A DNA stretch of 64,000 bases from Rebecca billardiae RCC1528. Lineage: Eukaryota > Protista > Haptophyta. The stretch is taken from the NCBI GenBank assembly GCA_965240325.2, contig OZ251243.1:930001-994000 (forward strand), given 5' to 3'. The number at the start of each line of letters is the position of its first letter. Position 1 is the first letter of the stretch. A program made the translations under genes and the position numbers. Below the pieces are notes generated by a model. That model saw only the letters and a list, made by a program, of their open reading frames with translations. It was not told the origin of the DNA and made no database searches. This document shows positions 30,979 through 61,700 of the stretch, one piece after another.

Positions 30979-31645
<667 letters not shown>

Positions 31646-36289: not shown

Positions 36290-39200
36290 TGGCGGCGGCA
36301 TCTGGAAGCATTCTAGATGCTTCCGAAACTCGTGAACGAAACATGAGCCGATCACACAAAACACGCTGAGCTCACCACCGCAAACAAGAGCCGAAGCCGT
36401 CGACCGACCTCGCGACCGTCAAGCCTCGAGACGCGTTCCCTGACATGCTAGCACGGTGCTGGGAGAACTTGGGCAAGGATGGAGACGACGAGAACAGCGG
36501 CAAGGACGTGAACGGCCATCAGCCCGCCCCAGTTGCTCCCCTCATTGGGTTGAAGCCAGGCGTGGCCGAGCGCGCGGCAATGCCGCGCGGCTCATCGGCG
36601 GTTGCGCGCAAGCGCACGCCAGACTACCTCGCGGCTGCCCTGAGGGGCATGCAGGCTGAGAAGAACCGGCAAGGCGAGAAGCTCACGCTTCTCCGCAAGC
36701 CCATCTCCAGCGCCTCCGGGCCTGGCAACATCGCTGACCTGAACTCAGGCAGCATCGTGTCGTATGCGCGCAATGCTGCATCGCACGCAAGGCCTCGAGC
36801 CGACATCAAGGATCACCTTGAGGAGGAGGTTCGCGCACAGCGCGGTGAGGAGGAGCGTTGCCGCTCGCATCCCCCGCCATCGCGCCACTCCATCCGCACG
36901 CACGTCGTTGCGCAGGGGATCTCAACAACTACCGCCCGGGACTCTGCGCCCGCGAGCGCGGTTCAAGAGCGCGCGGCTGAGAGCCCGCAGCTCAAGGAGT
37001 GCCTTGCGGCCTCCGAGTCATCGAACGAGGTCACCGAGCGTTCCGGGGCAGATGTAGCGCTCGACGCTGCTGCCGCTGATGCCGCTCCGACCGTCGAGGC
37101 CCTCGAGCCTGCCGACGCTGCTCCGCGTGCTGGCCACCTGGCCGCCGCCTGTGACAGCGCAGGTCGTGCCACCGCCGCAGTCAGTCTGCAGCCTCGCGCG
37201 CATGACACTGTGTCTGAGTCTGACCGATCGAACGAGGACATTAGCACCGATGAGTGCGACGCAAACGACCTGTATGGTCTGGCAGAGCAAACTATGCTCC
37301 AAGATGCTACGACACGTGACTCTGTCACAGCGAGCTCAAGCATCAAGTCAGCGGCCGCATTTATTATTGATGCGCCTGACCCAAACAAATACGTTTACTG
37401 GCGGCGGCATCTGGAAGCATTCTAGATGCTTCCGAAACTCGTGAACGAAACATGAGCCGATCACACAAAACACGCTGAGCTCACCACCGCAAACAAGAGC
37501 CGAAGCCGTCGACCGACCTCGCGACCGTCAAGCCTCGAGACGCGTTCCCTGACATGCTAGCACGGTGCTGGGAGGACTTGGGCAAGGATGGAGACGACGA
37601 GAACAGCGGCAAGGACGTGAACGGCCATCAGCCCGCCCCAGTTGCTCCCCTCATTGGGTTGAAGCCAGGCGTGGCCGAGCGCGCGGCAATGCCGCGCGGC
37701 TCATCGGCGGTTGCGCGCAAGCGCACGCCAGACTACCTCGCGGCTGCCCTGAGGGGCATGCAGGCTGAGAAGAACCGGCAAGGCGAGAAGCTCACGCTTC
37801 TCCGCAAGCCCATCTCCAGCGCCTCCGGGCCTGGCAACATCGCTGACCTGAACTCAGGCAGCATCGTGTCGTATGCGCGCAATGCTGCATCGCACGCAAG
37901 GCCTCGAGCCGACATCAAGGATCACCTTGAGGAGGAGGTTCGCGCACAGCGCGGTGAGGAGGAGCGTTGCCGCTCGCATCCCCCGCCATCGCGCCACTCC
38001 ATCCGCACGCACGTCGTTGCGCAGGGGATCTCAACAACTACCGCCCGGGACTCTGCGCCCGCGAGCGCGGTTCAAGAGCGCGCGGCTGAGAGCCCGCAGC
38101 TCAAGGAGTGCCTTGCGGCCTCCGAGTCATCGAACGAGGTCACCGAGCGTTCCGGGGCAGATGTAGCGCTCGACGCTGCTGCCGCTGATGCCGCTCCGAC
38201 CGTCGAGGCCCTCGAGCCTGCCGACGCTGCTCCGCGTGCTGGCCATCTGGCCGCCGCCTGTGACAGCGCAGGTCGTGCCACCGCCGCAGTCAGTCTGCAG
38301 CCTCGCGCGCATGACACTGTGTCTGAGTCTGACCGATCGAACGAGGACATTAGCACCGATGAGTGCGACGCAAACGACCTGTATGGTCTGGCAGAGCAAA
38401 CTATGCTCCAAGATGCTACGACACGTGACTCTGTCACAGCGAGCTCAAGCATCAAGTCAGCGGCCGCATTTATTATTGATGCGCCTGACCCAAACAAATA
38501 CGTTTACTGGCGGCGGCATCTGGAAGCATTCTAGATGCTTCCGAAACTCGTGAACGAAACATGAGCCGATCACACAAAACACGCTGAGCTCACCACCGCA
38601 AACAAGAGCCGAAGCCGTCGACCGACCTCGCGACCGTCAAGCCTCGAGACGCGTTCCCTGACATGCTAGCACGGTGCTGGGAGGACTTGGGCAAGGATGG
38701 AGACGACGAGAACAGCGGCAAGGACGTGAACGGCCATCAGCCCGCCCCAGTTGCTCCCCTCATTGGGTTGAAGCCAGGCGTGGCCGAGCGCGCGGCAATG
38801 CCGCGCGGCTCATCGGCGGTTGCGCGCAAGCGCACGCCAGACTACCTCGCGGCTGCCCTGAGGGGCATGCAGGCTGAGAAGAACCGGCAAGGCGAGAAGC
38901 TCACGCTTCTCCGCAAGCCCATCTCCAGCGCCTCCGGGCCTGGCAACATCGCTGACCTGAACTCAGGCAGCATCGTGTCGTATGCGCGCAATGCTGCATC
39001 GCACGCAAGGCCTCGAGCCGACATCAAGGATCACCTTGAGGAGGAGGTTCGCGCACAGCGCGGTGAGGAGGAGCGTTGCCGCTCGCATCCCCCGCCATCG
39101 CGCCACTCCATCCGCACGCACGTCGTTGCGCAGGGGATCTCAACAACTACCGCCCGGGACTCTGCGCCCGCGAGCGCGGTTCAAGAGCGCGCGGCTGAGA

Positions 39201-39616
39201 GCCCGCAGCTCAAGGAGTGCCTTGCGGCCTCCGAGTCATCGAACGAGGTCACCGAGCGTTCCGGGGCAGATGTAGCGCTCGACGCTGCTGCCGCTGATGC
39301 CGCTCCGACCGTCGAGGCCCTCGAGCCTGCCGACGCTGCTCCGCGTGCTGGCCATCTGGCCGCCGCCTGTGACAGCGCAGGTCGTGCCACCGCCGCAGTC
39401 AGTCTGCAGCCTCGCGCGCATGACACTGTGTCTGAGTCTGACCGATCGAACGAGGACATTAGCACCGATGAGTGCGACGCAAACGACCTGTATGGTCTGG
39501 CAGAGCAAACTATGCTCCAAGATGCTACGACACGTGACTCTGTCACAGCGAGCTCAAGCATCAAGTCAGCGGCCGCATTTATTATTGATGCGCCTGACCC
39601 AAACAAATACGTTTAC
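36290..39616 (+). repeat. Three tandem 1109-bp units (3' half of LTR + 5' gag)
   Basis: Units 36290-37398, 37399-38507 and 38508-39616; ORFs recur with a period of 1109. Confidence 0.95.
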
Positions 39617-41236
39617 CCCAAAATTACCAGCCTCACGATGGCTTCCGAAGCCGAGCTGCTCGCCACGAGCGACACAAGCAGCCGCGAGATGACCGCCGCA
39701 GAGACGGCAGAGTCCTCGTCTGGCACGTATCGACTCGCGTCGAACGTAGGAAGCGCATGCGATGCAGGGGGGGCATCATACACCTGCTTGACGGCAAAGC
39801 CGCAGCAAAACCAAGTTGGCGAGCGCGACGCGCGTGCGCATGCATCAGCTGCGTCAGCCATCACAACGCCACACTCTTGCAAGGAAGAGTATTCCGCCGA
39901 AGCTGCCGCGGATGCACATGCATCACCGCTGGACAGAACGAGCGTGAAGAAGCCCAAAGAAGGCACCACAGCCTCGACGAGGGTCACTCCTCGCTCGAAG
40001 GTAGAGCGCGAATCGCCACAGAGCGCGCGCGACACATCGACCAATGCACTTGAGTCGAAGAAACGTGACTGGATAGTCATCGAAGGAGGAGTCACAGACT
40101 CTAATCCAACCAAGAAGGAACGTGTGTTCATGGCACGCGAATCCTCGGCAGGAGTGGATACACCCGCCACACACAAGCTGACACAGTCGGCTCTGAAATC
40201 CAAGCGCGCGGTACACAGCGCGATACGGGATGCACTCGCAGAAGTGAGCACCTACTACAAGGGCAAATCCTCAGATGTCACACCGGACATAATGGAGCCC
40301 AAGGATAGCAAGCTATCCGGCTTTCAACTCATTGCCAAAGACAAATGGGTGAAAGACGCAGCCAAAATCGATCCATACAAGGCTGACAACGCTGACGCCA
40401 ACAAGATCGGATCGGTCTACGATCGATCTGCGGCAGCGATATTCAAGCAGCTGAAGGACTCTATCGAGCCTCAGTTATTCGCCTATCTGGAATCGAAGCT
40501 GCACATCAGCGATCCGACCAAGAACTACTTGGATCTGGCGCTGCTGCTACAGATATTTGAGCGCGAGCTCAAGATCACAACTATGTCCGAACTCAGGGAT
40601 GAATTCCTGAAGTTATACCCGACAAAGGTGTCGCCCATTGGCGCATCGGACATTATCAAGAAATCCGTCGAGCAAGTCCGCTCATCTCGATATGGGAATC
40701 TGGACGATGCTACGATGTTGGTCTTCAAGCTGTATAACAGCATGCACGACCATCCCCAAGTCTACGAGTCAGTTATCTCGCACTTCGGAGCGCTCACGCC
40801 CGAGCAATGTGTGGATAACACTGACCAGATATTGGCCCAGATGGAAGATGCCTACAAACGGCACGGCTCAATGAAGCTACTCCATCAGAACAATACCAAG
40901 GGGAGAGAGACCGAAAACTATTCCAAGATACGCCAAAATGCTGATTATCAGCAAGGCACGCGGCGACGCGGTGACTTTGAGGGCGCCGAAGTCTTCGCCG
41001 CTCAGGCCCAAAAGGCTCCAGCCAATGGCGAGAGCGGGCCGAATAACTCGGACACCGGCAAACGGTGCACTCACTGTGGTCTCAAGAACCATACTGCCCA
41101 GCAGTGTTGGAGGCTCCACCCAGAGCTACGCCCCAAGGCCAACAATTACAACAAAGGCAAAAACAAGGGAGCCAACAAGTTTCCCAAGGAGCGTATCCAT
41201 TTCCTGGATATTCCTGCTCCGGATGCCTATGATTAA
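38663..41236 (+). CDS. gag: Gag-like protein with CCHC zinc knuckle
   Basis: CTHCGLKNHTAQQC (CX2CX4HX4C) near the C-terminus; lower GC; inside LTRs. Confidence 0.85.
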   Translation: MLARCWEDLGKDGDDENSGKDVNGHQPAPVAPLIGLKPGVAERAAMPRGSSAVARKRTPDYLAAALRGMQAEKNRQGEKLTLLRKPISSASGPGNIADLNSGSIVSYARNAASHARPRADIKDHLEEEVRAQRGEEERCRSHPPPSRHSIRTHVVAQGISTTTARDSAPASAVQERAAESPQLKECLAASESSNEVTERSGADVALDAAAADAAPTVEALEPADAAPRAGHLAAACDSAGRATAAVSLQPRAHDTVSESDRSNEDISTDECDANDLYGLAEQTMLQDATTRDSVTASSSIKSAAAFIIDAPDPNKYVYPKITSLTMASEAELLATSDTSSREMTAAETAESSSGTYRLASNVGSACDAGGASYTCLTAKPQQNQVGERDARAHASAASAITTPHSCKEEYSAEAAADAHASPLDRTSVKKPKEGTTASTRVTPRSKVERESPQSARDTSTNALESKKRDWIVIEGGVTDSNPTKKERVFMARESSAGVDTPATHKLTQSALKSKRAVHSAIRDALAEVSTYYKGKSSDVTPDIMEPKDSKLSGFQLIAKDKWVKDAAKIDPYKADNADANKIGSVYDRSAAAIFKQLKDSIEPQLFAYLESKLHISDPTKNYLDLALLLQIFERELKITTMSELRDEFLKLYPTKVSPIGASDIIKKSVEQVRSSRYGNLDDATMLVFKLYNSMHDHPQVYESVISHFGALTPEQCVDNTDQILAQMEDAYKRHGSMKLLHQNNTKGRETENYSKIRQNADYQQGTRRRGDFEGAEVFAAQAQKAPANGESGPNNSDTGKRCTHCGLKNHTAQQCWRLHPELRPKANNYNKGKNKGANKFPKERIHFLDIPAPDAYD

Positions 41237-42075
41237 CTATCAAGGCAGGGCATAGCCCAATAACAAGGTCCAAGATCAAGGCCAAAGAGTGAACACATGG
41301 TGCAAATAAGCCCAGGACTGACTCGGGTTACCCATAACCGTCACACGGAAGTCCCAGCACATGACCCGTATCCTGGCATTGGCAACCATTACTGACTCCA
41401 ATTCACTCATGCACACAGATGCACAAACAATACCAAGCCCAAAATCACTCATAATCCAAGCTTAGTCCTCACAGACGAGCGCATATTGGATTGAGAGGGG
41501 GTGTCAAAGGAATCGCCAATCTACAGTGATTTCCAATTTCCAATCCAACATTTTACTCGCAGTCACACAGTGGCGGCGCGACCGCTGCGGCGGCGCTCGC
41601 ACAAAATCCTCCAAAATCAACCTGAACCTCATCCTAAAATACAGCAGGACAGCATGGCTGGCGGCGGCATCTGGAAGCATTCTAGATGCTTCCGAAACTC
41701 GTGAACGAAACATGAGCCGATCACACAAAACACGCTGAGCTCACCACCGCAAACAAGAGCCGAAGCCGTCGACCGACCTCGCGACCGTCAAGCCTCGAGA
41801 CGCGTTCCCTGACATCTGTCAATTACTGCTGAATTAGACTCTATATCATCATAGCTATCATATCCGCGCCGCATCACGCGCGGATCCTGATCGCACGACC
41901 GTGACGACGCATTTGGCCATCATCGTCAAGTTCTATTATTTAAAATATATTTCCCATCTGATCAATATATATATATATATGGATATATATATATATATAT
42001 ATTGATCGGGTAGTGTCGAAGTCGAGCGCAGCTGAGCGTCGCCAGCGGACGCCTCTAGACATACTGCTAAGTATA

Positions 42076-43710
42076 CTATCTGCTGCGTCGTAATCGCGCG
42101 CGGCGGTGCGCCACCATGCCTCCGCCGTATGTCGGCCCGAGCTTAGTGGCGTCAGCTATGTAGCGCAAGCCCTCCGCCGGCGTCCAGAAGTGCTTCGGCG
42201 AGTTGGTCGTGCGCGGTCGCGTGGGCACGTGCGGGAGGCCCAGCGTGCGGTTCTTGCGCAGCGAGAGCTCGACCAGCAGCAGCTCGAACGCGCGGCCGCG
42301 CTCGCCATAGTCAAACGCGCGCCGCCAGCGCAGCAGCTCGGCGCCCATCCGCTCCACCTGCTCAGGCGTGACGGCGCGCACGACCTCGGCGAGCCGCGCG
42401 CCCTCGCGCTCGGGCAGCTTGAGCGTGAAGCGGTGGAAGTTGACCAGGTGCTCGAACGCGAACGAGATCGGGTCGGACAGCACCACGGGGATGCAGCCGG
42501 CGAGGACCGCGTCGAAGAAGCGCTTGGTCCACGGCGTGTTGCCGCGCGGGATGATGCAAAAGATGGAGCGGCGCAGCTCGGAGGCGTACGTGCTCGCCTT
42601 CTCGGCGAAGACGAAGTCGGCCTCGTGCTGCAGCCGCGCGCGCAGGTCACGCCGCAGCACGTTCGGCTTGAAGCGGCGGTGCCCCTCGGCATCCTTGAGG
42701 GCCGCGTCCATGCCGCCTCGGAAGAAGCCGAGAATCGATTTCGAGCCCGGCTGTGCGCTGGCCACGTCCGGCACGTTGGTCACCCAGCCGGGGACGACGA
42801 TGTCGTGGCCGTAGCGGAAGTAGTCGGCCTCGCGGTCGCCCTCGGCCACGATGAAGATCGCCTCCTTCAGCCGCGGCACCGCCGCCCACCCCGGCGGGTC
42901 CGGCAGCATCGATGCGCCGATGCCGCTCATGAAGAAGAACACGTGCCGGTCTGGCCTCTGCCGCCACGCCTCGTGCGTCTCGAGCTCGGCGGTGAGGCGG
43001 CGGAAGGCGCGGCCGAGCGCGGAGAGCTTGCCGTGCGCCGCGTAGTTCAGGTAGCACTTCGCGAGGAACGGCACGATCAGGAAGTCTGCCGCCGCCGGGT
43101 CGTCGGTCGCGTACTCGGAGGCTCGAATCTTCTCAATCAGGTGGTAGTCGCCCGCCCACTGAAACCGCGTGCACTTCGGGTACTGGCGCACGAGCTCGGA
43201 GGCGTCGGCGAAGTGCAGCGTGTACGTGTACAGCTTGAGGCCCCGGTCCACCGTCGCGATCACCTCGTCCAGGGACGGCTCGTCGTCGTGACCGGCGGGC
43301 TCTGGCAGCAGCTCGCCCGCAACGCTCAGCACCGGAGTGCCGCGATCTGCTGCGAGTGCGCGCTCCGGAAGGGGCGCTCGCCCGATGCGGGAGACGTCGC
43401 GGCTTCCACGCTGTCGTGTGGAGTCCAAGGCAGCCTGCTCGGCCGCACGATCCCTCGGCGCTGCGCCGGGTACGACGCCGCGGGCCTCGCGCGCGTCAGT
43501 TCCGACTCCCAAAGCCACGGTTCGATTGCCGCCCCCGCGTCGCCTGCCCATGGCAGCATCCTCGTGCAGCACGACTTCGTAGTGCTGCACTCGACCAGGC
43601 GCGTCATGGCTGAACGGTCGCACGGGCCCGCCGGTCCCAAGCGCAGCCAGAAAGCCGGCCGCCAGGCCGAGGCCGGCGGCCATGCACAGGCGCGCCCTGC
43701 TCGGCGCCAT
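42076..43710 (-). CDS. Exostosin-family glycosyltransferase (GT47)
   Basis: N-terminal TM anchor, TDDPAAADFLIVPF, DIVVP, FFRG, SIFCIIPRG, FFDAVLAGCIPVVLSD. Confidence 0.9.
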   Translation of the reverse strand: MAPSRARLCMAAGLGLAAGFLAALGTGGPVRPFSHDAPGRVQHYEVVLHEDAAMGRRRGGGNRTVALGVGTDAREARGVVPGAAPRDRAAEQAALDSTRQRGSRDVSRIGRAPLPERALAADRGTPVLSVAGELLPEPAGHDDEPSLDEVIATVDRGLKLYTYTLHFADASELVRQYPKCTRFQWAGDYHLIEKIRASEYATDDPAAADFLIVPFLAKCYLNYAAHGKLSALGRAFRRLTAELETHEAWRQRPDRHVFFFMSGIGASMLPDPPGWAAVPRLKEAIFIVAEGDREADYFRYGHDIVVPGWVTNVPDVASAQPGSKSILGFFRGGMDAALKDAEGHRRFKPNVLRRDLRARLQHEADFVFAEKASTYASELRRSIFCIIPRGNTPWTKRFFDAVLAGCIPVVLSDPISFAFEHLVNFHRFTLKLPEREGARLAEVVRAVTPEQVERMGAELLRWRRAFDYGERGRAFELLLVELSLRKNRTLGLPHVPTRPRTTNSPKHFWTPAEGLRYIADATKLGPTYGGGMVAHRRARLRRSR

Positions 43711-43771
43711 CGCCCGCCGTGATCGCGCCGGGCCGGCGGGCCGTGGGACCGGAATCAACAAGACAGGAGCG

Positions 43772-45751
43772 ATGGTGTGTGATCACACCGGCTGCACCAC
43801 GCGGCCTTCGTTCGGCATGCCGGGCGACGCGCGCGCCAGCCGGTGCGCTGAGCACAAGCTGGCTGGCATGGTCAATGTGAAGAGCCGCAAGTGTGATCAC
43901 TCCGGCTGCACCACGCAGCCCTCATTCGGCATGCCGGGCGACGCGCGCGCCAGCCGGTGCGCTGAGCACAAGCTGGCCGGCATGGTCGATGTGAGGAGCT
44001 CCAATTGTGATCACGCCGGCTGCACCAAGTGGCCTTCGCTTGGCATGCCGGGCGACGCGCGCGCCAGCCGGTGCGCGGAGCACAAGCTGGCTGGCATGGT
44101 CCGCTTGAAGAAGAAGGCAGAGTGTGGTCACGCCGGCTGCACGACGGGGCCTTCATTCGGCATGCCGGGCGATGCGCGCGGCAGCCGGTGCGCTGCGCAC
44201 AAGCTGGCCGGCATGGTCGACTTGAGGAGCCTCAAGTGTGATCACGCCGGCTGCACCAAGTGGCCTTCGTTTGGCAAGCCGGGCGACGCGCGCGCCAGCC
44301 GGTGCGCTACGCACAAGCTGGATGGCATGGTCGACGTGGCGAACCGCAAGTGTGATCACGCCGGCTGCACCAAGCAGCCTTCGTTCGGCATGCCGGGCGA
44401 CGCGCGCGCCAGCCGATGCGCCGAGCACAAGCTGGCTGGAATGGTCGGCTTGTACAAGCCCAAGTGTGATCACGCAGGCTGCACCAAGGGGCCTTCGTTT
44501 GGCATGCCGTACGACGCGCGCGCCAGCCGGTGCGCTGAGCACAAGCTGGCTGGCATGGTCGATATGGTGAACCGCAAGTGTGATCACTCCGGCTGCACCA
44601 CGCGGCCCTCGTTCGGCATGCCAGGCGACGCGCGCGCCAGCCGGTGCGCCGAGCACAAGCTGGCTGGCATGGTCAACGTGATAAGCTCCAAGTGTGATCA
44701 CTCCGGCTGCACCAAGCACCCTTCGTTCGGAATGCCGGGCGACACGCATGCCAGCCGGTGCGCTACGCACAAGCTGGCCGGCATGGTCGGCTTGAGGAAG
44801 CCCGAGTGTGATCACGCAGGCTGCACCAAGTGGCCTTCGTTTGGCATGCCGGGCGACGCGCGCGCCAGTCGGTGCGCCGAGCACGAGCTGGCTGGTATGG
44901 TCCGCTTGAGCAAGCCCAAGTGTGATCACGCCGGCTGCACCAAGTGGCCTTCGTTTGGCAAGCCGGGCGACGCGCGCGCCAGCCGGTGCGCTACGCACAA
45001 GCTGGATGGCATGGTCGACGTGGCGAACCGCAAGTGTGAGCACGCCGGCTGCACCAAGCAGCCTTCGTTCGGCATGCCGGGCGACGCGCGCGCCAGCCGA
45101 TGCGCCGAGCACAAGCTGGCTGGAATGGTCGGCTTGTACAAGCCCAAGTGTGATCACGCAGGCTGCACCAAGCAGCCTTTGTTCGGCATGCCGGGCGACG
45201 CGCGCGCCAGCCGGTGCGCCGAGCACAAGCTGGCTGGCATGGTCCGCTTGAACACGCCCGATTGTGATCACGCAGGCTGCACCACGCGGCCCTCATTCGG
45301 CATGCCGGGCGACTCGCGCGCCAGCTGGTGCGCTGCGCACAAGCTGGCTGGCATGGTCAATGTGAGGACATCCAAGTGTCATCATGCCGGCTGCACCGCG
45401 CGGCCTTCGTTCCGCATGCCGGGCGACTTGTGTGCCAGCCGGTGCGCCGAGCACAAGCAGGCCTGCATGATTCATGTTCGGCCTGGTGCGCACAAGCGTG
45501 GGCTGGAGCAAGCCATGGGCGACGAGGTGCAAACGAGCACCGCCAAGCGACAGGGCAAGCGCACCAGGAGCACAGCCGCAGCGTCGGACGCCACAGCGCA
45601 GCCGCAGTCGCAGCTGGCGCCGCTGGTCACAGCGCGCGCCGTGCTCTGGCGCTCGAATGGCAAGGTCTACGGTGATGTGCATCCGCAAGCAAGAGCTTCC
45701 AGCGCAGACGGGCCGATAAGACCCGTCGTCATGGCGAGGAGGGTCTACTGA
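43772..45751 (+). CDS. EsV-1-7-type Cys/His repeat protein, 15 x 38-aa repeats plus basic C-terminal tail
   Basis: MV followed by 15 tandem CDHAGC...HKLAGMV units; tail contains KRQGKRTR. Confidence 0.88.
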   Translation: MVCDHTGCTTRPSFGMPGDARASRCAEHKLAGMVNVKSRKCDHSGCTTQPSFGMPGDARASRCAEHKLAGMVDVRSSNCDHAGCTKWPSLGMPGDARASRCAEHKLAGMVRLKKKAECGHAGCTTGPSFGMPGDARGSRCAAHKLAGMVDLRSLKCDHAGCTKWPSFGKPGDARASRCATHKLDGMVDVANRKCDHAGCTKQPSFGMPGDARASRCAEHKLAGMVGLYKPKCDHAGCTKGPSFGMPYDARASRCAEHKLAGMVDMVNRKCDHSGCTTRPSFGMPGDARASRCAEHKLAGMVNVISSKCDHSGCTKHPSFGMPGDTHASRCATHKLAGMVGLRKPECDHAGCTKWPSFGMPGDARASRCAEHELAGMVRLSKPKCDHAGCTKWPSFGKPGDARASRCATHKLDGMVDVANRKCEHAGCTKQPSFGMPGDARASRCAEHKLAGMVGLYKPKCDHAGCTKQPLFGMPGDARASRCAEHKLAGMVRLNTPDCDHAGCTTRPSFGMPGDSRASWCAAHKLAGMVNVRTSKCHHAGCTARPSFRMPGDLCASRCAEHKQACMIHVRPGAHKRGLEQAMGDEVQTSTAKRQGKRTRSTAAASDATAQPQSQLAPLVTARAVLWRSNGKVYGDVHPQARASSADGPIRPVVMARRVY

Positions 45752-45881
45752 TCAGCTGATGAGGGACTGAGGGAGGCCGACAGTCTGAGACGCTGAGTCT
45801 GACTCATCACGTTCGTGACGACCGTGACGATATATATATAGCGCGCGTCAATTACTACGCGTCAAAAACCCCAGCATTACA

Positions 45882-46374: not shown

Positions 46375-48045
46375 TATGGCCCGCGGTGCAGGGCGGAGCG
46401 CGCAGCGTGGAGCCCGCTCCGTGGGCCCTAACCACGTTTCAAAAAGATCTTTGATCAAGAAAAGACGGGGGACGATTTTCATGGCTGGAGGAGACCGAGT
46501 TTTGAATTTTGAGACCCTCTCTAACACGCATCACGGCCGAAATGGACGCGCCCACAACAAGTTCATAGTAAAGCGTGGAGTGACGCCCGTCCAAAAAACT
46601 TCACGCCCTTTAGGATCCCTAACGTAACGAACCGTTACAAGCGATTTTTTCGGCCAATGAGATTGCAGCAAGGTCCAAGGAGCGATGACGTATCTAGATA
46701 CTAGATAGAGATTGCCGCGAACCGATGTGGCCATGTACGTCCCTTGAATCAGTTGAATCAACTATTCAATCGCGCCGTGTCTGTATCAGGAGCCAACATG
46801 GCAAGGGTCAGTAACCGATGCGCCAACTTCGGCGTATCCGGTATCTCAATACTATCTGACACGAGTCTGGAGCCGGACGGCTGCCCAGCAAAGCCAAACC
46901 TTGGTTGCTGCGCACTCTCCGCGAGAGGGTCGCGAGCCGCACGAGCGACCGACGGGTGAGTACGGCGATGGGCAGGTGCGCGCGGCGAGTTGCGCCTGGA
47001 GCGCGCGGCTGTGGCGGGTCCCGACTGGCGACTGCCGTCGACATCGCGTTCGTGCCCCCGCTCACTCCGCGCGCCCCCGCCGCCCCGTGTCGATGCCTGC
47101 GCGCGGCCGCGCGCGTCGCCCGCGGCCGCGCCGCGGCAGCCGCCCTGTATTCGGGCTCTCGCAAGCTCGGGGGCAGCGGCGCCTGATGCCGGACTGATCG
47201 ATCTCTGAGTCTTCGACTTCACCACGCGCCGCCCTTGCCATGCCTTTCCGGGGAGCGCCGACGATCCGAGTCCATCGTCGACGGTCGACTCTGAGCGAGG
47301 GCTACGCCTCGGAACTGAACGGTACTCTACGAGGAGGACGAGCTGCGCGGGCGACGGTGGTGCGTGCCGTCCCCAGAGCTGGCTGTGCCTCTGCAACGCG
47401 TGCCGAGCCTGATCGAGGTGTGTCAGCCCGTGCACGCGCGGCGTGCGCGAACGACCTGTGACTGCGGTGCCCTCGAACCTCGGCACTGCGTGCTCCCTCG
47501 GGCTGTCAGCTCCGCGTGGCCTGGCGTGCACGTAGAGTTGAGCTCATGCGTCGATCACGCCTCGCGCCCGCCTGTCGGCCGTCGCGCAGGCGCTGGTCGA
47601 ACCCTACTCGGACCAGTGCAAATCATCTAACTATCCTGGCGCTGCCGGTGCGCGTAGCCGTAGTGACCCGGGACAGCGGTCAGTCAGCAGCAGCGGCCCG
47701 AACGAATCCGCGGCCCCGCACCGTGCTCCCTGGCTGTCAGCTTCGCGTGGCCTGGCGTGCACGTGGAGTCGCGCTCATGCGTCGATCACGCCTCGTCGCA
47801 TCCGCCTGTACACAATCGGCGCCGCGCCGGCGGCTGCGAAGTGCGATGGGCCCGCCCGCAGCGCGGCCGGGGCGGCGGCGCGCCGCTGGTGGAGACAGGA
47901 GAGTCTAGTTGTACGGGCATGCAACTCCGGGTCTGTCAATAGACGACTGCGACGGAGGGTGCACCGCCACCGCGGGCCCTGAACTACGTGCGTTCTACGG
48001 AAAAGGACCGCGGAACCAAAGGAATCAAGGAGGGAAACGCGGTCA
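46375..48045 (+). mobile_element. TATGG-led dispersed repeat, copy 2 (may extend to TATGG at 48230-48234)
   Basis: High similarity to 6225-7818 except a ~400-bp internal segment. Confidence 0.75.

Positions 48046-50300: not shown

Positions 50301-50303
<3 letters not shown>

Positions 50304-50382
<79 letters not shown>
50304..50382. repeat. (GA)n microsatellite
   Basis: Directly visible. Confidence 0.97.
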
Positions 50383-50385
<3 letters not shown>

Positions 50386-50523
50386 AGAGGCACCGACTGT
50401 AGCGACTGCTGCCTGAACAGAGTGAGTGAGCAGTGAATAAGACTCTGATACAGCAGTCTGCTCGTCTGCTTCTTGACGCGTAACACACCGATATGTCCAC
50501 GTATCCTAGCCCACAGAGAGCCC

Positions 50524-51591: not shown

Positions 51592-51662
51592 CGTTTCTCA
51601 GCCCGCGTCCGGCCGCCCGCCCGCCTGCGCGGCTGGGCCGCAGCCGCGCACTCGCGGTGTTG

Positions 51663-52358
51663 ATGGCCGGCGGCGGTCCCATCTACCTCGCGAGCCGGCG
51701 ACTCTGCGCCGTGGCCCTGCCGTGCTCGGTCTTCGCGGCGCTCGGGTGCTCGGTGGGACAGGTGCGCTTGACGCAGCACCGTGGGGGTGGGAGCGCGCTG
51801 TCCATGGCCCACTCCTCGGTCCGCCGCGTGACGACGACCACCGACGACGATGCCGTGACGGCGCGCATCGTGAAGCGTATCGCCGAGAGCGAGCTCACCG
51901 CATCGGCGGCCGACGTGAAGGTGGAGCAGATCCGCTCGTACTACTGGTGGGATGGTGCCGTACAGAACGATGCCGAGACGCGCGTGTCCTTCGAGACCAC
52001 CGCGCCCTTCGAGACCGCGCGAGACGTCGTCGCGGCCTCGCACAGCTATGACACGCCGATGATCATCGCTCCAGCCGGGGGCGAGACGGAGCACTGGCGC
52101 GGCGAGATCGCTGACGCGACGGAAGAGATGGCGGCAGATCTTGCCAGCTCTCGCCTCGTCGCGTGCGCCCAGCTCGCGCCCGCGGCCGACGCCAGCCCGG
52201 CCGTGCTTTCGGTGAAAACGGTGCGGGGCGCGATCCCTTTTGTTGAGAAGCGCGTCAAGAGCTTCGACACCAAGCTGCACGTGGCATGGGAGCCGATCGT
52301 GGGCAACCAGGCGTATCTTGATTGGCTGGTGGAGGAGACGAAGGTGCCCGAGAAGTGA
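51663..52358 (+). CDS. cutA: Tandem CutA1-like domain protein with N-terminal targeting-like extension
   Basis: IRSYYWWDG..E, HSYDTP in half 1; LASSRLVACAQ, VKT, GNQAYLDWL in half 2. Confidence 0.75.
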   Translation: MAGGGPIYLASRRLCAVALPCSVFAALGCSVGQVRLTQHRGGGSALSMAHSSVRRVTTTTDDDAVTARIVKRIAESELTASAADVKVEQIRSYYWWDGAVQNDAETRVSFETTAPFETARDVVAASHSYDTPMIIAPAGGETEHWRGEIADATEEMAADLASSRLVACAQLAPAADASPAVLSVKTVRGAIPFVEKRVKSFDTKLHVAWEPIVGNQAYLDWLVEETKVPEK

Positions 52359-52949
52359 GAGCCACTGGTCGAGCCGCGGCTGGGAAGAGGCCGGACGAGG
52401 ACGGAAGGGCGGGAAGGCGCCTCGTCATGCTCCTGCAGCGGCAGTTTCACTGAGCAGTGAGCAAGAACTCTGAGTCTCACGGAGGCTCTGGCTCCGGCCG
52501 CGGGCGCGGCGAGTCAGAGACACTCGGCGTAGTCATCAGCATCACATCAGTCGTAGTAGCATCAGTGATCAGCCGATGCAGCAGAGTCCGCCCTGTTCCG
52601 ACTCCCCCGAGGCCGATTGGCCGATTGATGACTTACTTCCGACGAGATGAAATGTCGCGCATCATATCCGCTCGGACTGTCACCTCCCAATAGGTTCAGA
52701 CTCTATTTTTACTGCTATGTAATTATCCGTCCCTTACTCAGATTTCAGCACAGTCCGGGAGCGTTCCGGACACCGCTGTAACTGTATACATATGCGAAAA
52801 GGATATCCGGACTGGGTATCTAGTTATAGAAAATAGAGGCTTCTGAACCTATTGGAGGTGTGGCTGATGATCCATCTGGCCGTAATATATATTGTTGAGC
52901 TGACGAGGCCAGGGGCGCGCATCTCAGCAGATGGCGTCGCCGGCGGTGA

Positions 52950-53788
52950 CAGGCGGCGGACCCCGCCGGCCCGGAGGCGGAGGAGCCCGAGGGGGAGGGT
53001 TCGGACGATGCCATCCCGCCACCCCAGCCACCAACCGCGGCCGCGCCGTCGGACGGGCCCGAGGTGCAACAGGCCAGGCCGGCGCTCGGGGAGTCCAACT
53101 ACCGCCTGGTCCTGCCCCCCGGCGCCGCGGCAGCCGGCAAGCGCGCGGCGACCGAGCCGTCCACGCCGGCGGAGGAGGATGGGCCCTCCTCCGCTGGCGG
53201 GAGCGACGCCAAGCCGGCCAAGCAGGCTCGCACCGCGTCCCTCGGCGACCCCCCCCGTGACCTGGCTGCCGCCGCGCCGCAGTCGCTGGCGTAGAGCCGC
53301 GCGCGGCGCTGGCGCGCCAGACGCGCCCGGTTGGGCAGCGCAGGCACCCTCAGCGGCCAGGACGACGACTTCCTCAACGGCAAGGGCGACGACTTCCTCT
53401 GCGGCCAGGGCGACGACTTCCTCAACGGCAAGGACGACGACTTCCTCAACGGCAAGGGCGACTACTCCCTCAACTCGGCAAGGCCACTAGGCCGCGCACA
53501 CCGGCCCGGGCGACCACATCCACTACCTGCACTACGGCATCAACTTGAACAGCCTCGGACGACGACGACACGGGCAACTACATGATGACCAAGGCCGACG
53601 ACGACTGCAAAACAGCGGCATCCCCGGGCGCCTACTACCTCAGTGACCGTGTGATCAGCATCGGTTACGACGACTCCCTCACCCGCGGCCAACGCGCTCC
53701 GACATCCTCCATTAACTCCATTCAGTACTTCGACAGACGAATCAGGAGAGCTGCGCCCTCGTGCCTGTGTCTTTAAATCATAGAATTA
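52950..53788. mobile_element. 839-bp insertion in the E2 5' LTR containing a 24-bp x5 minisatellite
   Basis: Absent from the 3' LTR (GGTGA|GTCAGGG). G(A/G)CGACGACTTCCTCAACGGCAAG units at ~53361-53481. Confidence 0.65.
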
Positions 53789-54070
53789 GTCAGGGCCGGT
53801 GCTGCAGCAGGCAGACCGGCGGCGCAGCTGCTGCAGAGCAGCAGTGCGGATGAACTGGCACAGTCTGGGGCACGCATCTCAGCAGATGGCGTTGCCGCTG
53901 GGGTGTCAGGGCTGGCGCCGCATCAGGCGGGCCGGCGGCAGCAGCTGCTGCGGAGCAGTGGCTGGCAGCGCGCGCGTCCAGGACGCGCGCGGCAGCAGTG
54001 AGCAGACGCGCGAGCGCGGAGCAGCGCGGGCGCAGCGGCGCGGGAGCGCGGAGCAGCGCGGGGCGCGCGG

Positions 54071-54298
54071 AACAGCGCGGAGCAGCGCGGAGCAGCGCGG
54101 AGCAGCGCGGAGCAGCGCGGAGCAGCGCGGAGCAGCGCGGAGCGCGCGGAGCAGCGCGGAGCAGCGCGGAGCAGCGCGGAGCAGCGCGGAGCAGCGCGGA
54201 GCAGCGCGGAGCAGCGCGGAGCAGCGCGGAGCAGCGCGGAGCAGCGCGGAGCAGCGCGGAGCAGCGCGGAGCAGCGCGGAGCAGCGCGGAGCAGCGCG
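54071..54298. repeat. (GCAGCGCGGA)n 10-bp satellite in the E2 5' LTR
   Basis: Directly visible; a shorter array lies in the 3' LTR. Confidence 0.95.
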
Positions 54299-57200
54299 GG
54301 CGTCATGCTGGTACACTGGATTTGTCCAAGGAAAGCAGGTGAGCAGCACCGGACATGGACGAGAAGCAGTGGTACAAAGTTGAGCGGCAACAGGACGGAC
54401 GGTGCGATCGCCGATTGGCTGATCGCGGCAAAATCTGGGTAAGTCGGCACGGCGATGATACTACCGCCCCGAGCCCAGGAGCGATCGGAGCTCGATCGCT
54501 GTTTTGGCCCGGCGCAAGAGCGCCGGAAATAAGGGCCAGGTTCAGAGGCTTGAGAGCTGATGAGATCGCGAGGCATGTGATCCTCGCGGTGGCGTCCGTC
54601 CTGTCGTGCGCGGTGAGCTTTTAGCAGGGCTCGAGACGCTCGGAGCTTGCGGTAATCCCAATATGCGCGCAGCAACCCCAGGGAGGGAGTTGTCCGCACT
54701 GTCCTTTCTCATCGATTGGGCTGATGGGCACGAGCGGCCGCGGTTGCAGGATGGGCGGAACGAGGAACTCTGGCGTCGCATGGAATGCAGCAGAGGTTCC
54801 TGGCCGAGAGCGCGGGCAAACTGGCGACGCTCTCGATGGGGCATGGCGCTACGATGCCAGGGATCATCGGCATCATCTCCGCGCATGGCCCGGACGCGGA
54901 ACTTCGCGTCGATTGGGAGGAACAGTACCTGTCGGTGATGAGCCCGACACGACAGCCTCCCGGAAGCTCACGATTGGATCTGAGCGGATGCAGCTGGTGC
55001 AGGAGAACTACTGCGTGCAGCGGCGGATGACTGAGCAGCGCTACTGGCACGATCGGCGCGAGCACGCACCCCGAGCGCCGGGTGGCTGCACGGCAGCTGA
55101 CGGCGGCGACGGCGGGCTCGGCGATCTACTCGGAGGGGCTGGCTCATCAACCTGTCCGGTGGTCTAGGGCACCGGATGGCGGCTGGCAGCTGGACTGGGT
55201 TTTGCGGTCCGGCTGGCACGGCTGGCACGACCGGACTGGACACAGGTCCGGCGGTTGGCACACCCGGATCTATCGGAATCGTCCGGGTGGAATCTGGCGA
55301 CACGAGCGCCGTTACGGCGGCGGGCAGTGCTTGGCACTGGTCCTACGCCGGCAGCTGACGCGAGGCGCAGCTGGCAGTGCCACCGAGATGGCGGCGCTGG
55401 CGCGACTGTTGAGTCGCGGGAATCGCGCGCGCGCGAGGCGCGAGCGCGGGATCATGACGGGGCGGCGCAGCGGTGCCGAGACTACGTCTGCAGCTGACGC
55501 GAGGCGCAGCTGGCAGTGCCGCCGAGACGGCGGCGCTGGCGCGATCTTTGAGTCGCGGTATCCGCGCGCGCGCAAGGCGCGAGTGCGGGGTGACGGCGGG
55601 GCAGTGCATGGCACTCGGCCCACGCCGGGAGGTTCAGCTCGATTCCATGCTGCGGGCCGAGATCATTCGGCGGCAGGTGGGGACCCGACGCTGAGGCGTC
55701 GGAAGCACACGCACGGCGCAGGACGCCGGTGCGGCGTGTGTGCGCGCAGCAGCGCGCGGCAGTGGCTCGGCGGCGCTGGGCGCACCGAACCAGGTGGTCG
55801 TACGCCCGGTGGTGGCGGCGGCACCCACACGTCCACGCACGAAGCTCATCGCCTGGCTCAGGCGGCGGTGGCGACGGCGGGGATCGTGGCGGCGGCCAAG
55901 ACGGCGGAGAGATACCGACTGGCTGCGAGGGCGGAGGAGGCAGCGGCGGCGGCGATCAGCGCGCGCCGCGCGCGGAGCAGCTCCGTGGCTTCAACGTACT
56001 CTGGTACGTATGTCGTGTAGACGACGGACGTCTCTTCACTTGCGTGACGTACGCATCGACGAGACCGACCTGGTCGAGGGGGGGCACTCGTCGCTGGGCG
56101 CACCTGACGGTGGCGCGTACGTGGGTGATGGTGACGGCGCCGCGGTAAGCGGCGGACATCGTCCGGTCGGCGGTGACGCCGACGGTGAGGACGAGGACGG
56201 CGACGGCGGCGAGCAGCCAGCCGACGCCGGGAATGACGACGCGACAGAGTTCGACGTCGGGTACGACGACGACGCAGATGCGTCAACGTCGGGGCGCGGG
56301 CGCAGCAGCGTGGACGCGGGACAGCGCGGGTGCAGCAGCGCGGGCGCACAGCCGTCGACGCCGACGCCGCAGGGCGGGCGTGGCGGGACAGGCGCGTCGA
56401 TGACGCAGCCGGGTCGGCAGGGTCAGATACCGCCGGCGGAATCACGGCGCGGGGCCGCAGCAGATGCTGGCGGGCCGCCGCGCGGCGCAGGACGATGACG
56501 GCGACGGCGGCGAGCCGCCGGCCGACGCCGGTGACGACGACGCGACGGAGTTCGACGTCAGGAACGACGGCGACGCAGATGCGTCGGCGTCGGCGCGCGA
56601 GCGCGGCAGCGCGGACGCGGAACAGCGCGCGGGCGCGGCAGCGCGGGCGCGGAACAGCGCGCGGGCGCAGCAGCGCGGGCGCGGAACAGCGCGCGAGCGC
56701 AGCAGCGCGGGCGCGGAGCGCGCAGGCGCGGCAGCGCAGGTGCGGAACAGCGCACGGGCGCGGCAGCGCAGGCGCGGAACAGCGCGCGGGCGCAGCAGCG
56801 CGTGCGCACAGCCGTCGACGCCGACGCCGCAGGGCGGGCGTGGCGGAGCAGGCGCGTCAGCGACACAGCCTGGGTCGGCAGGGTCGGATCCCGCCGACGG
56901 AATCCCGGCGCGGGGCCGCAGCAGATGCTGGCGGGCCGCCGCGTAGCACAGGTGCGCGGGCGCAGCAGCGCGGGCGCGGGTCAGCGCGGGCGCAGCAGCG
57001 CGGGCGCACGGGCGCACAGCCGCCGATGCCGCAGGCCGGCGATCGGGGCGGTGCGGGCGCGCCATGGGCGCAGTCGCACTGGTGGTATGAGATACCACCG
57101 GCGCAACTTTGGCGCGGGACCGCCGCGCAGATGCGGGCGGGTTGCCGCGGGTCGCAGAGGCGATCGATGGCGGGCTCGAGCGATTCGGCACGAACGCGAG

Positions 57201-57949
57201 CACGCGGATACGGCTGCCAGAGGCAGCGGCGCGCGCGAGGCTGACCGACGCGGACAAGGCGTTGGTCCAGCGCGCGGAGATTGACGAGCTCGACGACTTG
57301 CTCACTTTGGGTGACTCTGTTTGGTCTAACAACCCAGGGGAATCCGGGTGGAGGTCGACGGGTGGCTGCATCATTGTCTTCTACAATGGATCGCCGGTGT
57401 CGTGGCACAGCAGCGGGCTGCAGGTTATGGCCCAGCTGAGCTCGACGGAGGCGGAGTACGTGGCGTGAGGTCAATGTACCACGCCGACATCATGACGAAG
57501 GCGACGGACGACGCTGCTACGTTTGAGTGGCACGTCGACGCCATCATGGTGTGCGACACCCGACGCGCGCGCGATGAGCGGCGCTACTCGCTCGCGGCTA
57601 TGGCTGTCGAGGGGGGGTGTTGAGCTGACGAGGCCAGGGGCGCGCATCTCAGCAGATGGCGTCGCCGGCGGTGAGTCAGGGCCGGTGCTGCAGCAGGCAG
57701 ACCGGCGGCGCAGCTGCTGCAGAGCAGCAGTGCGGATGAACTGGCACAGTCTGGGGCACGCATCTCAGCAGATGGCGTTGCCGCTGGGGTGTCAGGGCTG
57801 GCGCCGCATCAGGCGGGCCGGCGGCAGCAGCTGCTGCGGAGCAGTGGCTGGCAGCGCGCGCGTCCAGGACGCGCGCGGCAGCAGACGCGCGAGCGCGGAG
57901 CAGCGCGGGCGCAGCGGCGCGGGAGCGCGGCGCAGCGCGGGGCGCGCGG

Positions 57950-58147
57950 AACAGCGCGGAGCAGCGCGGAGCAGCGCGGAGCAGCGCGGAGCAGCGCGGA
58001 GCAGCGCGGAGCGCGCGGAGCAGCGCGGAGCAGCGCGGAGCAGCGCGGAGCAGCGCGGAGCAGCGCGGAGCAGCGCGGAGCAGCGCGGAGCAGCGCGGAG
58101 CAGCGCGGAGCAGCGCGGAGCAGCGCGGAGCAGCGCGGAGCAGCGCG
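57950..58147. repeat. (GCAGCGCGGA)n 10-bp satellite in the E2 3' LTR
   Basis: Directly visible. Confidence 0.95.
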
Positions 58148-58721
58148 GGCGTCATGCTGGTACACTGGATTTGTCCAAGGAAAGCAGGTGAGCAGCACCG
58201 GACATGGACGAGAAGCAGTGGTACAAAGTTGAGCGGCAACAGGACGGACGGTGCGATCGCCGATTGGCTGATCGCGGCAAAATCTGGGTAAGTCGGCACG
58301 GCGATGATACTACCGCCCCGAGCCCAGGAGCGATCGGAGCTCGATCGCTGTTTTGGCCCGGCGCAAGAGCGCCGGAAATAAGGGCCAGGTTCAGAGGCTT
58401 GAGAGCTGATGAGATCGCGAGGCATGTGATCCTCGCGGTGGCGTCCGTCCTGTCGTGCGCGGTGAGCTTTTAGCAGGGCTCGAGACGCTCGGAGCTTGCG
58501 GTAATCCCAATATATATCGTCTAGACAAGGGACCGCCTGGGGTGGTCGAGGACTACGGCTATATTGTACGGATCATCACGGAGGCGGCGATCCTCATCCG
58601 GCCGCAGATTGCAGTGTCAAGTCACTCAAGATGTATAAGTATAACGCTCCGCAGTGACCGGGCTGGGGGGGGGGACCGAAGCCGGAGCCGGCGGTCGTCT
58701 TTGATGATGATATGCCTTATT

Positions 58722-61700
58722 TGTTGTATATTAATCCCGAATTTCCTACGTGCACGATTTCTTTTTCTTCTCCGGGCGGTTGGCTCCAACCGTCCGGATG
58801 GTCGAAGTATCCGGCACTGCCTGCAGAGCTGCAGGCGAAAGCTGCGCTGCCAGTTACGTATGGCGGCCGTTTGCCCCCCACCGCTTTTTGCATCCGTTTC
58901 TGAGGACGCACCGCCCGCTCGTCCGCACGGACGGCGCTGCTGACGACGTCCGCAGGGACACTGTGATAAGCCCCTGCGTGACCGGGGAACTGGTAAGGCG
59001 GAATAAACATCATGAGCTCAGACGTGTGAAACCACGGACCGCCGGGCATGGCCCATCCAGCCGGTCGCAGCGCCGCGGGTGGCGCGACGAACGCGCGGGC
59101 AATTATGCTCGCGTGCTGCGCGCTCTGCATCGAGCAGCCGAGTGAAAGCGCGCTGACGAACCAGATACCCACGCACGGCGTGGTGTACGACTTCGGTGAC
59201 TACCAGAAGGACATCCGTTACGCAACCTCGAATGTCCTCCGCCTGCAGGGCGGCTGCGCGCGCGGTACGAACCGCGCGAGCATTGACGTGCCCGCGTGTG
59301 GCACTTGCGGTGACGACACCGCGGCGGGGGCCTGGATGGTCCTCGTGATCGACAACGTCGAGCACGAGCTCGATGATGATGGGAATGGAGACGATCCATA
59401 CCCTTCACGGCATCCGCTGAAGCCGATGCTGCGAGCGCCCCGACCATCCTCACGAGAGGACAGCTGGACGGGGCGCGAGGTGCTGCTCGACGACGGGCAG
59501 CAGCAGGTGATACACTCAAAGGACGTGTACATCATTGATGAGCGGTCGCTGGTCGAGGGGAGGCACACTCCATTCGCGGCCAGCGATGACAATGCCGAGC
59601 CCGAGACTGAGCTGGGAGACGCCGCTGACGGCGAGCTCACCGGCGAGGGCGACGAGCATTTTGAGATTGAGGACGGCGCGGCCGATGACGGCGGCGCTGC
59701 TGCTCATGACGACGGTGGCGCGGCAAGCGAAGCTGCGCGATCGAGCGCCGACGGCGATGACGCCGGAGGCGATGACGACGCACGAGCTGGTGAGTCCGCG
59801 GCGCCCGAGCTGCCGCGCGACTACGACCCGATGCGACGAGACCGAGCGAGGCGGAGCAGACCCGCCGCGCAGACGGTGCAGGCTGTGACCGAGGCAGCGT
59901 TCCAGGCCGCGGGCGAGGAACCTACCGAGGAGAACAGCTTCGAGGCATTCGCTGCGACGACAATCGCGCGGATGAATGGTGTGCCGATCACCATCCCCAC
60001 GACGTGGGACGAGGCGATGAAATCGCCCGAGGCCAAGCTCTGGATGCAGGCCTGCCATGACCACCTCGACGCGCACGGCGTGAGACACACGTTCTTCGAG
60101 GTGATTGTTCCGGACACCACGCGCACGATTCCTGTCAAGTGGGTGTTCGACGTGAAGACGCTTCCCGATGGCGAAGTGATCAAGTTCAAGGCGCGGCTGG
60201 TAACCCAGGGGTTCCGCCAGCGCGAGGGCATCGACTTCAATGAGGTGTTCGCCCCGACGATACGACCAGAACAGCTGCGGCTGATGCTCGCGGTCGCGCT
60301 CAAGGCCAAAGGCGTCTCGATGACGGACGCGGCGAGCGCCAAGATCGTGGAGATGCGACCCGCCGACGTGCGGCACGCATACCTGAACAGCGACCTGCCG
60401 GAGGGCGAGGAGGTGATGACACCGCTCCCGCCTGGCTACACCCCGAAGAGCTCGACGCCGCTCGGCTCGAAGGTGGTCGCGAAGTTTGTGAAGGCGCTCC
60501 CAGGCATGCGCCAGGCCGGGCGCGTGTGGTACCTACACTTGCGTAAGTGTTTGCTCGAACATGGGTTCGAGCCGTGCCCGAGCGCGCCGTGCATCTACTC
60601 GAAGGCAGTCGATGGCGGCTACGTGTTCGTCGGTCACTTTGTCGACGATCTGCTGATGATGAACATCTCGAAGGACAAGAACGCGTTGGACGCGCTGATG
60701 ACGGCGTTGCTGACGCACTACGAGATGCAGGGCGCGGACTGCCTGAGCAAGTTCCTTGGCGCCGAATTTGAGACCACGGTGGACGGACTTTTTACCCACC
60801 TGAACCAGTACATCGGTGATGTGTGCGAGCGCTTCCACCTGAGTGGAGAGCGCCACCCACCGACCCCCGAGTGCAGCGAGACGCGCGAGATCCCCCGCCC
60901 GCTGCAAGCCCTCCTGCTGCGCGCTGACCGCCAGCACTACCAGGAGATGACCGGTGCCCTCATGTACTGCATGACGACGTGTCGCCCCGATATCGCACAC
61001 GCCGTGAACATGCTGGCACGCCGGATGTCCAATCCCCGGCTCTACGACTTGACCGCCGCGAAGCGCACGCTCCGATACTTGCTCGGCACGCGTCGGCGCG
61101 GCATCCTCTTCCGGCACGCGACGCACGCACAACACCCTGATTTGGTGGCGTACGCGGACTCGGACTGGGCGAACGATCGTGAAGAACGACGTTCTACGAC
61201 GGGATACCTTGTTATGTACAACGGGGTCCCGATCTCGTGGCACAGCGGACTGCAGAGCGTGGTCGCGTTGTCTACGTGCGAGGCGGAGTACATCGCGCTG
61301 AGCGAGTGCTGCCGCGAGGTGATCTACCTGCGCGACCTGGTGACGTTTTTGAACGAGCCGGTCGTGGAGCCCACGACGGTGATCTACGAGGATAACCAGG
61401 GCACGATCGATTTGACGAACAACCCGGTGCACCACAAGCGCACCAAGCACATTGACGTGAAGTACCATTTCACGCGGCGCGCGCAAGCCGACGGCGCCGT
61501 GCTGATCCAGAAGGTGCCGACCGACGACAACCGGTCCGACATCATGACCAAGGCTACCGCGACGAGTACTTTTCTCAAGCACGTCGTGGCGATACTGCAT
61601 GCTGTTCCACCACCTCCGCCGCCTTCGGCATGATGTCGAGGGGGGGTGTTGTATTAATCCCGAATTTCCTACGTGCACGATTTCTTTTTCTTCTCCGGGC

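Follow-up and report, generated by a model that had tools for sequence, protein, structure and literature searches.

Perfect palindromes beside the long terminal repeats of haptophyte Copia elements suggest that DNA copying starts without a host tRNA

How does a retrotransposon start to copy its RNA into DNA when the place beside its 5' long terminal repeat (LTR) holds a short palindrome and no recognizable tRNA primer site? The question is raised by three elements, here called E1 (36128-41819), E2 (52888-58517) and E3 (58717-61943), in a stretch of 64,000 nucleotides from the haptophyte alga Rebecca billardiae RCC1528 (contig 26, OZ251243.1, positions 930001-994000; hereafter the window, to which plain coordinates refer). 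The assembly comprises 72 Mb at ~68% GC, including plastid and mitochondrial contigs. To our knowledge, textbook LTR elements and retroviruses all prime with a host tRNA or, as in Tf1, with their own 5' end. The palindrome found in E1, E2 and E3, of the form TG-NNNN-CA, suggests that DNA copying was started without a host tRNA. To the fuller reading, drawn from sequence comparison, that it is the minus-strand primer site, selected for self-complementarity and served by the element's own RNA, we give about an even chance.

Palindromes at the first position after the LTR

The three elements have 5-bp target-site duplications and polypurine tracts, and in each the palindrome lies at the first position (+1) after the 5' LTR. 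A sequence-only reading of the window had placed the palindromes there, and its coordinates and sequences proved exact. The boundaries are given below, where FamB is an autonomous Copia family of the same genome that resembles E2.

36128-36132, + strand: E1 target-site duplication TCTGT (right copy, 41815-41819)
36133-36445, + strand: E1 5' LTR, 313 bp, TGTCA...TGACA
36446-36453, + strand: E1 palindrome TGCTAGCA, at +1 after the LTR
41493-41501, + strand: E1 polypurine tract GAGAGGGGG, preceding the 3' LTR
41502-41814, + strand: E1 3' LTR, 313 bp, 100% identical to the 5' LTR
52888-52892 and 58513-58517: E2 target-site duplication TATAT
52893-54663, + strand: E2 5' LTR, TGTTGAG...CCCAATA
54664-54671, + strand: E2 palindrome TGCGCGCA, at +1 after the LTR
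57609-57617, + strand: E2 polypurine tract GAGGGGGGG, in a GTCGAGGGGGGGTGTTG context as in E3 and FamB
57618-58512, + strand: E2 3' LTR, 86-89% identical to the FamB LTR ends
58717-58721 and 61939-61943: E3 target-site duplication TTATT
58722-59012, + strand: E3 5' LTR, 291 bp, TGTTG...CATCA
59013-59020, + strand: E3 palindrome TGAGCTCA, at +1 after the LTR
61638-61646, + strand: E3 polypurine tract GAGGGGGGG
61647-61938, + strand: E3 3' LTR

The LTRs of E1 and E3 have TG..CA ends. Those of E2 end TG..TA, and a TA repeat leaves a 2-nt ambiguity at the end; its 5' LTR is also interrupted by ~838 bp at ~52950-53787 that are absent from the 3' LTR. Sequence comparison places E1 (Gag-only), E2 (non-autonomous) and E3, which encodes only a reverse transcriptase (RT), all within Copia. 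The description of E1, E2 and E3 as three distinct families needs correction in that they are not wholly independent: all are Copia, and E2 is derived from FamB.

Four distinct words occur at these junctions, and all are perfect palindromes: TGCTAGCA in E1, TGCGCGCA in E2, TGCATGCA in FamB, and TGAGCTCA in E3 and in a further autonomous family, FamE. In the GC-rich window 0.9% of TG-started 8-mers are palindromic, mostly TGCGCGCA, a measured value that replaces the naive chance of 1/256 per element assumed at first. At ~1% per site the joint chance of three palindromes at +1 is negligible.

The words are also conserved within families. TGCTAGCA was present at every E1 junction that was read (30 E1 loci) except in one degraded copy (L049). 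For E2 and FamB we counted junctions with the pattern CCAATA/TGCRYGCA (the slash marks the LTR end), with the reversed pattern as the control. The 61 matches comprised 23 with TGCGCGCA (E2) and 38 with TGCATGCA (FamB and the related FamC). These two words differ by a double central change, CGCG versus CATG, and the single-step, non-palindromic forms TGCACGCA and TGCGTGCA were found at 0 of the 61 junctions, with a control count of 0. For E3 and FamE the pattern ATCA/TGAGCYCA gave 53 matches with T, the palindromic TGAGCTCA of E3-type elements and FamE, and five with C; the latter lie outside the listed element positions and are close to the control level of 3. About 20 of the 53 are FamE copies, mostly lying ~5.2 kb upstream of their RT. 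Palindromy, which the sequence-only reading took to survive changes of the central bases, is thus retained through such a double change between E2 and FamB, and across ~30 E1 (bar L049), 61 E2/FamB and 53 E3/FamE junctions.

In an alignment of the E3 family, the last 16 LTR bases and the 8-mer are invariant, while the two bases that follow (59021-59022) are the most variable of the 180 columns, with four and three states. An invariant 8-mer followed by two hypervariable bases is as expected at a strand-transfer or primer edge. In a degraded E3-family copy (L125; G000 C5:3007088-3007339) the primer site is locally rearranged in an odd way: the 8-mer is replaced by 19 nt, TTGATCATGAGCTCGATCA, in which GAGCTC lies between the inverted arms TTGATC and GATCAA.

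The word TGAGCTCA extends to environmental relatives. In L129 (protein 61% identical) the junction reads ..GGTTGTCA/TGAGCTCAAAC, which contains TGAGCTCA; in L210 and L217 (54-63% identical) two differing contexts fix the LTR end, and TGAGCTCA opens the gag frame. A metagenome scan with the shared polypurine-tract word returned 80 loci, with Copia in only 5, and a search for proteins sharing words with the N-terminus of FamB Gag found no relatives.

The palindrome supplies the TG of the gag-starting ATG in E1, E2, FamB, FamE and L210. In E1, A36445 and the palindrome form the ATG of the Gag-only open reading frame (ORF); in E2, A54663 does the same for a 92-codon frame; in FamB the junction ATG shares the reading frame of the entire Gag-Pol, and a 2258-aa FamE ORF begins at it. 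In E3 the ATG so formed opens merely a 5-codon frame. The words could be nothing more than a product of coding or chance in gag codons 1 to 3, to which the TG belongs, or a DNA site for a dimeric protein, since they resemble paired bZIP-like half-sites (TGA..TCA or TGC..GCA). We consider this very unlikely: the +1 register is exact in every family, even in E3 with its five codons, coding needs no palindromy, and the background given above is low.

The search for a tRNA partner

The nuclear tRNA set (n = 37) was assembled from Rfam, with a model built on the first matches, and ARAGORN; comparisons with tRNA 3' ends covered 77 nuclear and organellar tRNAs. None of the palindromes has the features of a canonical 3'-end primer site (a TGG start and at least 8-12 nt of complementarity including CCA). 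Each palindrome class formed at most 2 contiguous pairs, at its first 2 nt, with any of the 77 3' ends, in agreement with the absence of tRNA 3'-end complementarity noted before. A further remark, that the E1 word is one mismatch from the Met-tRNA site, did not hold, as the initiator tRNA (iMet) of the host predicts TGGTATCGGCGG.

Internal tRNA regions gave a divided result. For TGCTAGCA, TGCGCGCA and TGCATGCA there was no 8/8 partner, G:U pairs allowed, anywhere in the 37 nuclear tRNAs, and no single partner is able to pair with all three of these TGC..GCA words. TGAGCTCA, which had escaped the sequence-only reading in this respect, pairs 8/8 with the anticodon arm of the initiator tRNA, UGGGCUCA (iMet 28-35), through seven Watson-Crick pairs and one G:U. 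This match speaks against priming by the element's own RNA. It is also uncommon: of the 16 palindromes that fit TGNNNNCA, just 2 pair this well with any tRNA.

The match supports a different explanation, a shortened half-tRNA site. Here the 5' half of iMet, ending ...UGGGCUCA-3' after a cut in the anticodon loop, would prime at TGAGCTCA, other tRNA halves or small RNAs would serve the TGC..GCA words, and palindromy would be a by-product of the symmetry of the anticodon stem-loop. The nearest outgroup Copia elements, from Chlorella vulgaris (L271) and a metagenome (L272), read ..CA/GGTTATGGGCC, a classical half-tRNA-iMet site, and Osser-type algal Copia elements have been reported to use a half tRNA-Met (PMC6317226). 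Retention of TGAGCTCA across divergent lineages and hosts also fits. However, three of the four palindromes lack such a partner, so that the half-tRNA explanation is a real rival for TGAGCTCA only, and E2 and its helper FamB would require different primers. The half-tRNA-iMet motif GGTTATG(G/A)GCC is absent at all junctions. We also asked whether the iMet 5' half pairs further into the tails of E3, FamE and L210, and rejected this: at -20 kcal/mol the pairing did not exceed a random GC-rich null of -20.5 +/- 3.6.

Furthermore, TGAGCTCA is one transition away from the complement of the iMet anticodon arm, TGAGCCCA, and the C at position 6 that would make it iMet-perfect was found at 0 of 53 element junctions. 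A control for what tRNA priming leaves behind is provided by FamG, a Copia family of the same genome in which ACA/TGG... stands at the ORF start and a canonical 3'-end site for tRNA-Ala is present. Its 25 copies comprised 17 with TGGCGGAGCCGCCGG, 7 with TGGTGGAGCCGCGGG and one mosaic. TGGTGGAGCCGCGGG is complementary without mismatch to the 3' end of tRNA-Ala(AGC), CCA included, and the commoner genomic allele has two mismatches. Such tRNA-copied alleles (8/25) show that these footprints are visible in this genome when a tRNA really primes. At two loci both FamG alleles lie 80-100 bp apart (G000 C13:1696195/1696296 and C39:308797/308877); these pairs resemble the traces that primer copying and aberrant transfer would leave. 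The lack of a tRNA-perfect C, the contrast with FamG and the random-level pairing beyond the 8-mer therefore disfavour iMet as the present primer, and we regard a shortened half-tRNA site as unlikely.

The elements, their relatives and their surroundings

The internal regions of E1 and E3 contain the following features.

38663-41236, + strand: E1 ORF, 857 aa
36289-39615, + strand: E1 head-to-tail triplication of a 1109-bp unit
59048-61633, + strand: E3 ORF, 861 aa, with a Copia RT (RVT_2, residues 349-603) and an RNase H-like tail

The E1 ORF is Gag-like in its C-terminal third, where it has a CX2CX4HX4C zinc knuckle, and contains no protease, integrase or RT. Its Gag is 50% identical to that of the autonomous, RVT_2-bearing Copia families FamD and FamE of this genome. 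Each triplicated unit joins the LTR's final 157 nt, the palindrome and an ORF segment of 944 nt, so that the palindrome recurs at 37555-37562 and 38664-38671. The arrangement resembles what a jump of strong-stop DNA from the 5' end of the RNA to an internal position would produce, with 1-nt microhomology. Contigs of the public run X1 showed only the normal continuation at the tandem junction and so gave the triplication no independent support. The unit begins at 36289, 20-28 nt 3' of TAAAATA, and on this sequence context 36289 (CUGGCGGCGGC) is a plausible start of the E1 RNA.

The E1 LTR has two further peculiarities. The E3/FamE word TGAGCTCA occurs within it, 79 nt before its end (36367-36374 and 41736-41743), and could be there by chance or as the remnant of a former LTR boundary. 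In both LTRs ARAGORN called a 'tRNA-Pyl (cta)' (36278-36355 and 41647-41724), probably a false positive caused by a perfect hairpin with a palindromic loop, GGAAGCA-UUCUAGA-UGCUUCC, just 3' of the likely RNA start. From its sequence this is possibly a dimerization hairpin.

E2 encodes no recognizable protein. FamB is represented by ~35 RT matches, mostly in open frames of 1248-1258 aa, with an RT 49% identical to that of E3. Its LTR ends are TG..TA like those of E2, and its LTR ends and polypurine-tract context match E2; one FamB copy (L083) has the same layout as E1, E2 and E3, with the palindrome beside an LTR-homologous end. By sequence, E2 is a non-autonomous derivative of FamB.

The E3 ORF matched PF07727 with E = 6.8e-42; no Gag, protease or integrase domain was detected in it. 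Its motifs KARLVTQGF, FVDD and RPDI do not discriminate between Copia clades. The FamE RT is 35% identical to that of E3. E3-type elements occur in many near-identical copies with an intact RT/RNase H ORF of ~867 aa, and a 1159-aa version exists too; a multiplying, RT-only LTR element is unusual. Recent activity of the elements is indicated by identical LTR pairs and by dozens of copies that are 99-100% identical, many with intact ORFs.

Around the elements, a 114-bp satellite forms two arrays of opposite orientation that flank the E1 region (32810-34135 and 43651-45549). The window also contains an AT-richer block at 30906-31650 with microsatellite-like repeats of 8-12 bp and long imperfect palindromes, a 1.1-kb direct repeat (6719-7811 and 46932-48016, 40 kb apart, 93% identical overall with blocks up to 100%), and an inverted 400-bp repeat (10536-10935 and 11253-11653).

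Candidate primers and known systems

What, then, could prime at these sites? The end of an LTR is defined by where the 3' end of the primer anneals, directly beside the unique 5' region (U5). The palindrome is therefore in the position of the primer site. It occurs once per element (checked in E1 and E3, the tandem copies of E1 apart), so that it has no partner in cis and any pairing must be intermolecular. Self-duplexes of the palindrome have predicted energies of -11 to -14 kcal/mol. Neither a second word of the kind known from GalEa elements (see below) nor a shared hairpin involving the palindrome was found, and the predicted folds were inconsistent among the elements.

In cis self-priming of the Tf1/Sushi type, the beginning of the transcript pairs back with the site that follows U5 and is then cut to serve as primer. 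It is the only proven tRNA-independent route for LTR elements, and some plant Copia elements (TAR) have been proposed to use it (PMC6317226). In the alga such self-priming is hardly credible. No LTR holds its own 8-mer or the 6-nt core of it (GCGCGC in the E2 LTR belongs to GC repeats), and nothing at the site is complementary to CUGGCGGCGGC, where the E1 RNA probably begins.

Alternatively, the palindrome might serve only as a signal for dimerization, packaging or translational control, comparable to a retroviral dimer initiation site (DIS) and overlapping the gag AUG, with another primer that forms little or no pairing at +1. Retroviral DIS are usually 6-nt GC-rich palindromes, the E1 fold places GCUAGC in a 9-nt hairpin loop, and the AUG overlaps the palindrome in E1, E2, FamB, FamE and L210. 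Against this, the primer 3' end sets the LTR boundary, and U5 runs directly into the palindrome; loop display is not predicted in E2, E3 or FamB; and E1 has its separate palindromic-loop hairpin near the likely RNA start. A role confined to such signalling thus seems to us quite unlikely.

Priming by the element's own RNA accounts for more of these features. A site that is its own reverse complement could be served by an RNA with the same word at its 3' end, and its stable inheritance would require a primer that ends in that word, which the element's own RNA could provide. The simplest primer would be a second copy of the element RNA, either the dimer partner or a processed leader of the repeat region and U5 (R-U5), cut just after the palindrome; priming would then be a trans version of Tf1-type self-priming. 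This would explain why the words are family-specific and change in matched pairs, why E2 and FamB differ in theirs, and why no tRNA-corrected alleles are seen. RNA-RNA pairing at the gag AUG could, in addition, turn the RNA away from translation and towards packaging and reverse transcription. The forerunner of the palindromic site was probably a half-tRNA-iMet site such as related Copia elements have. Priming from own RNA or a dimer, independent of tRNA, had been put forward in the sequence-only reading; of the explanations considered it fits the data best, although both priming and dimerization are steps that we infer.

Several points weigh against priming by the element's own RNA, besides the pairing of TGAGCTCA with iMet. 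Such priming requires a hypothetical cut that would leave a 3'-OH at the end of the palindrome. TGAGCTCA is common to lineages that are 35% identical in RT and to environmental relatives, which would be well explained by a conserved partner acting in trans. The change between the E2 and FamB words amounts to two transitions, and a fixed partner with a central U-G could wobble-pair with both. The tRNA set was without Leu, Ser, His, Ala-UGC and others, and the partner search covered tRNAs only. Finally, for FamE and FamG the LTR ends were set by analogy (ATG, ORF start and constant distance to the RT) and not from 3' LTRs. Taken to its full extent, the proposal is that cut genomic RNA primes its dimer partner independently of tRNA, at a word that acts as the primer site, links the dimer and provides the gag start codon, and that arose by a single transition from a half-tRNA-iMet site. 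We hold this full version more tentatively, at somewhat less than an even chance.

If priming by the element's own RNA is true, it is a new way to start reverse transcription in LTR elements, independent of host tRNAs. The question is testable with the E2/FamB helper pair, whose words differ, and with the tRNA-primed FamG as a control. There is also a practical side, as LTR annotation tools that demand a tRNA-type primer site will miss or misclassify such elements.

How do the algal sites compare with known systems? Like the half-tRNA-iMet sites of copia, Ty5 and Osser (hemiviruses), they belong to Copia elements and abut the LTR, and TGAGCTCA overlaps the region of the iMet anticodon arm. Unlike those sites, they lack GGTTA and are only 8 nt long, and every copy of TGAGCTCA deviates from the tRNA complement at one base. 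With Tf1 and Sushi they would share independence from tRNA and a primer that comes from the element's own RNA after a cut. However, Tf1 pairs its site with the first 11 nt of the transcript in cis, whereas the algal LTRs hold no complement, so that pairing would have to occur in trans, via the palindrome. The retroviral DIS (in HIV-1 a GCGCGC or GUGCAC loop) is likewise a 6-nt GC-rich palindrome that could link two RNAs and has an interplay with the gag AUG. It is, however, present in addition to an 18-nt tRNA site and lies in a hairpin loop, whereas the algal palindrome occupies the primer site itself; these elements have no separate primer site, and a DIS-like loop display is predicted for E1 only.

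The closest parallel is fungal. Full-text literature searches found one precedent for a palindrome that replaces the primer site, the Conserved Hairpin Site of GalEa elements (PMC5445492), an unexplained exception since 2017; this bears out the precedent named in the sequence-only reading. Compared by the features of the site, both are Copia elements without a tRNA site, with a short, strictly conserved palindrome at the junction, matched-pair variants and no complement in U5 (PMC5445492). The sites differ in detail. The GalEa word has 9 nt (CTGATCAGT or CTAATTAGT) and is palindromic only if the last A of the LTR is counted, and a second complementary word (CHSeq2) 12-41 nt downstream forms a hairpin with it that contains an A/A mismatch (PMC5445492); no such word was found in the algal elements. 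The algal site has 8 nt and begins only beyond the final LTR base, an A that it completes to the gag ATG. With several recently active families and four palindromes, in an alga rather than a fungus, the elements described here provide a second, simpler and richer case beside GalEa.

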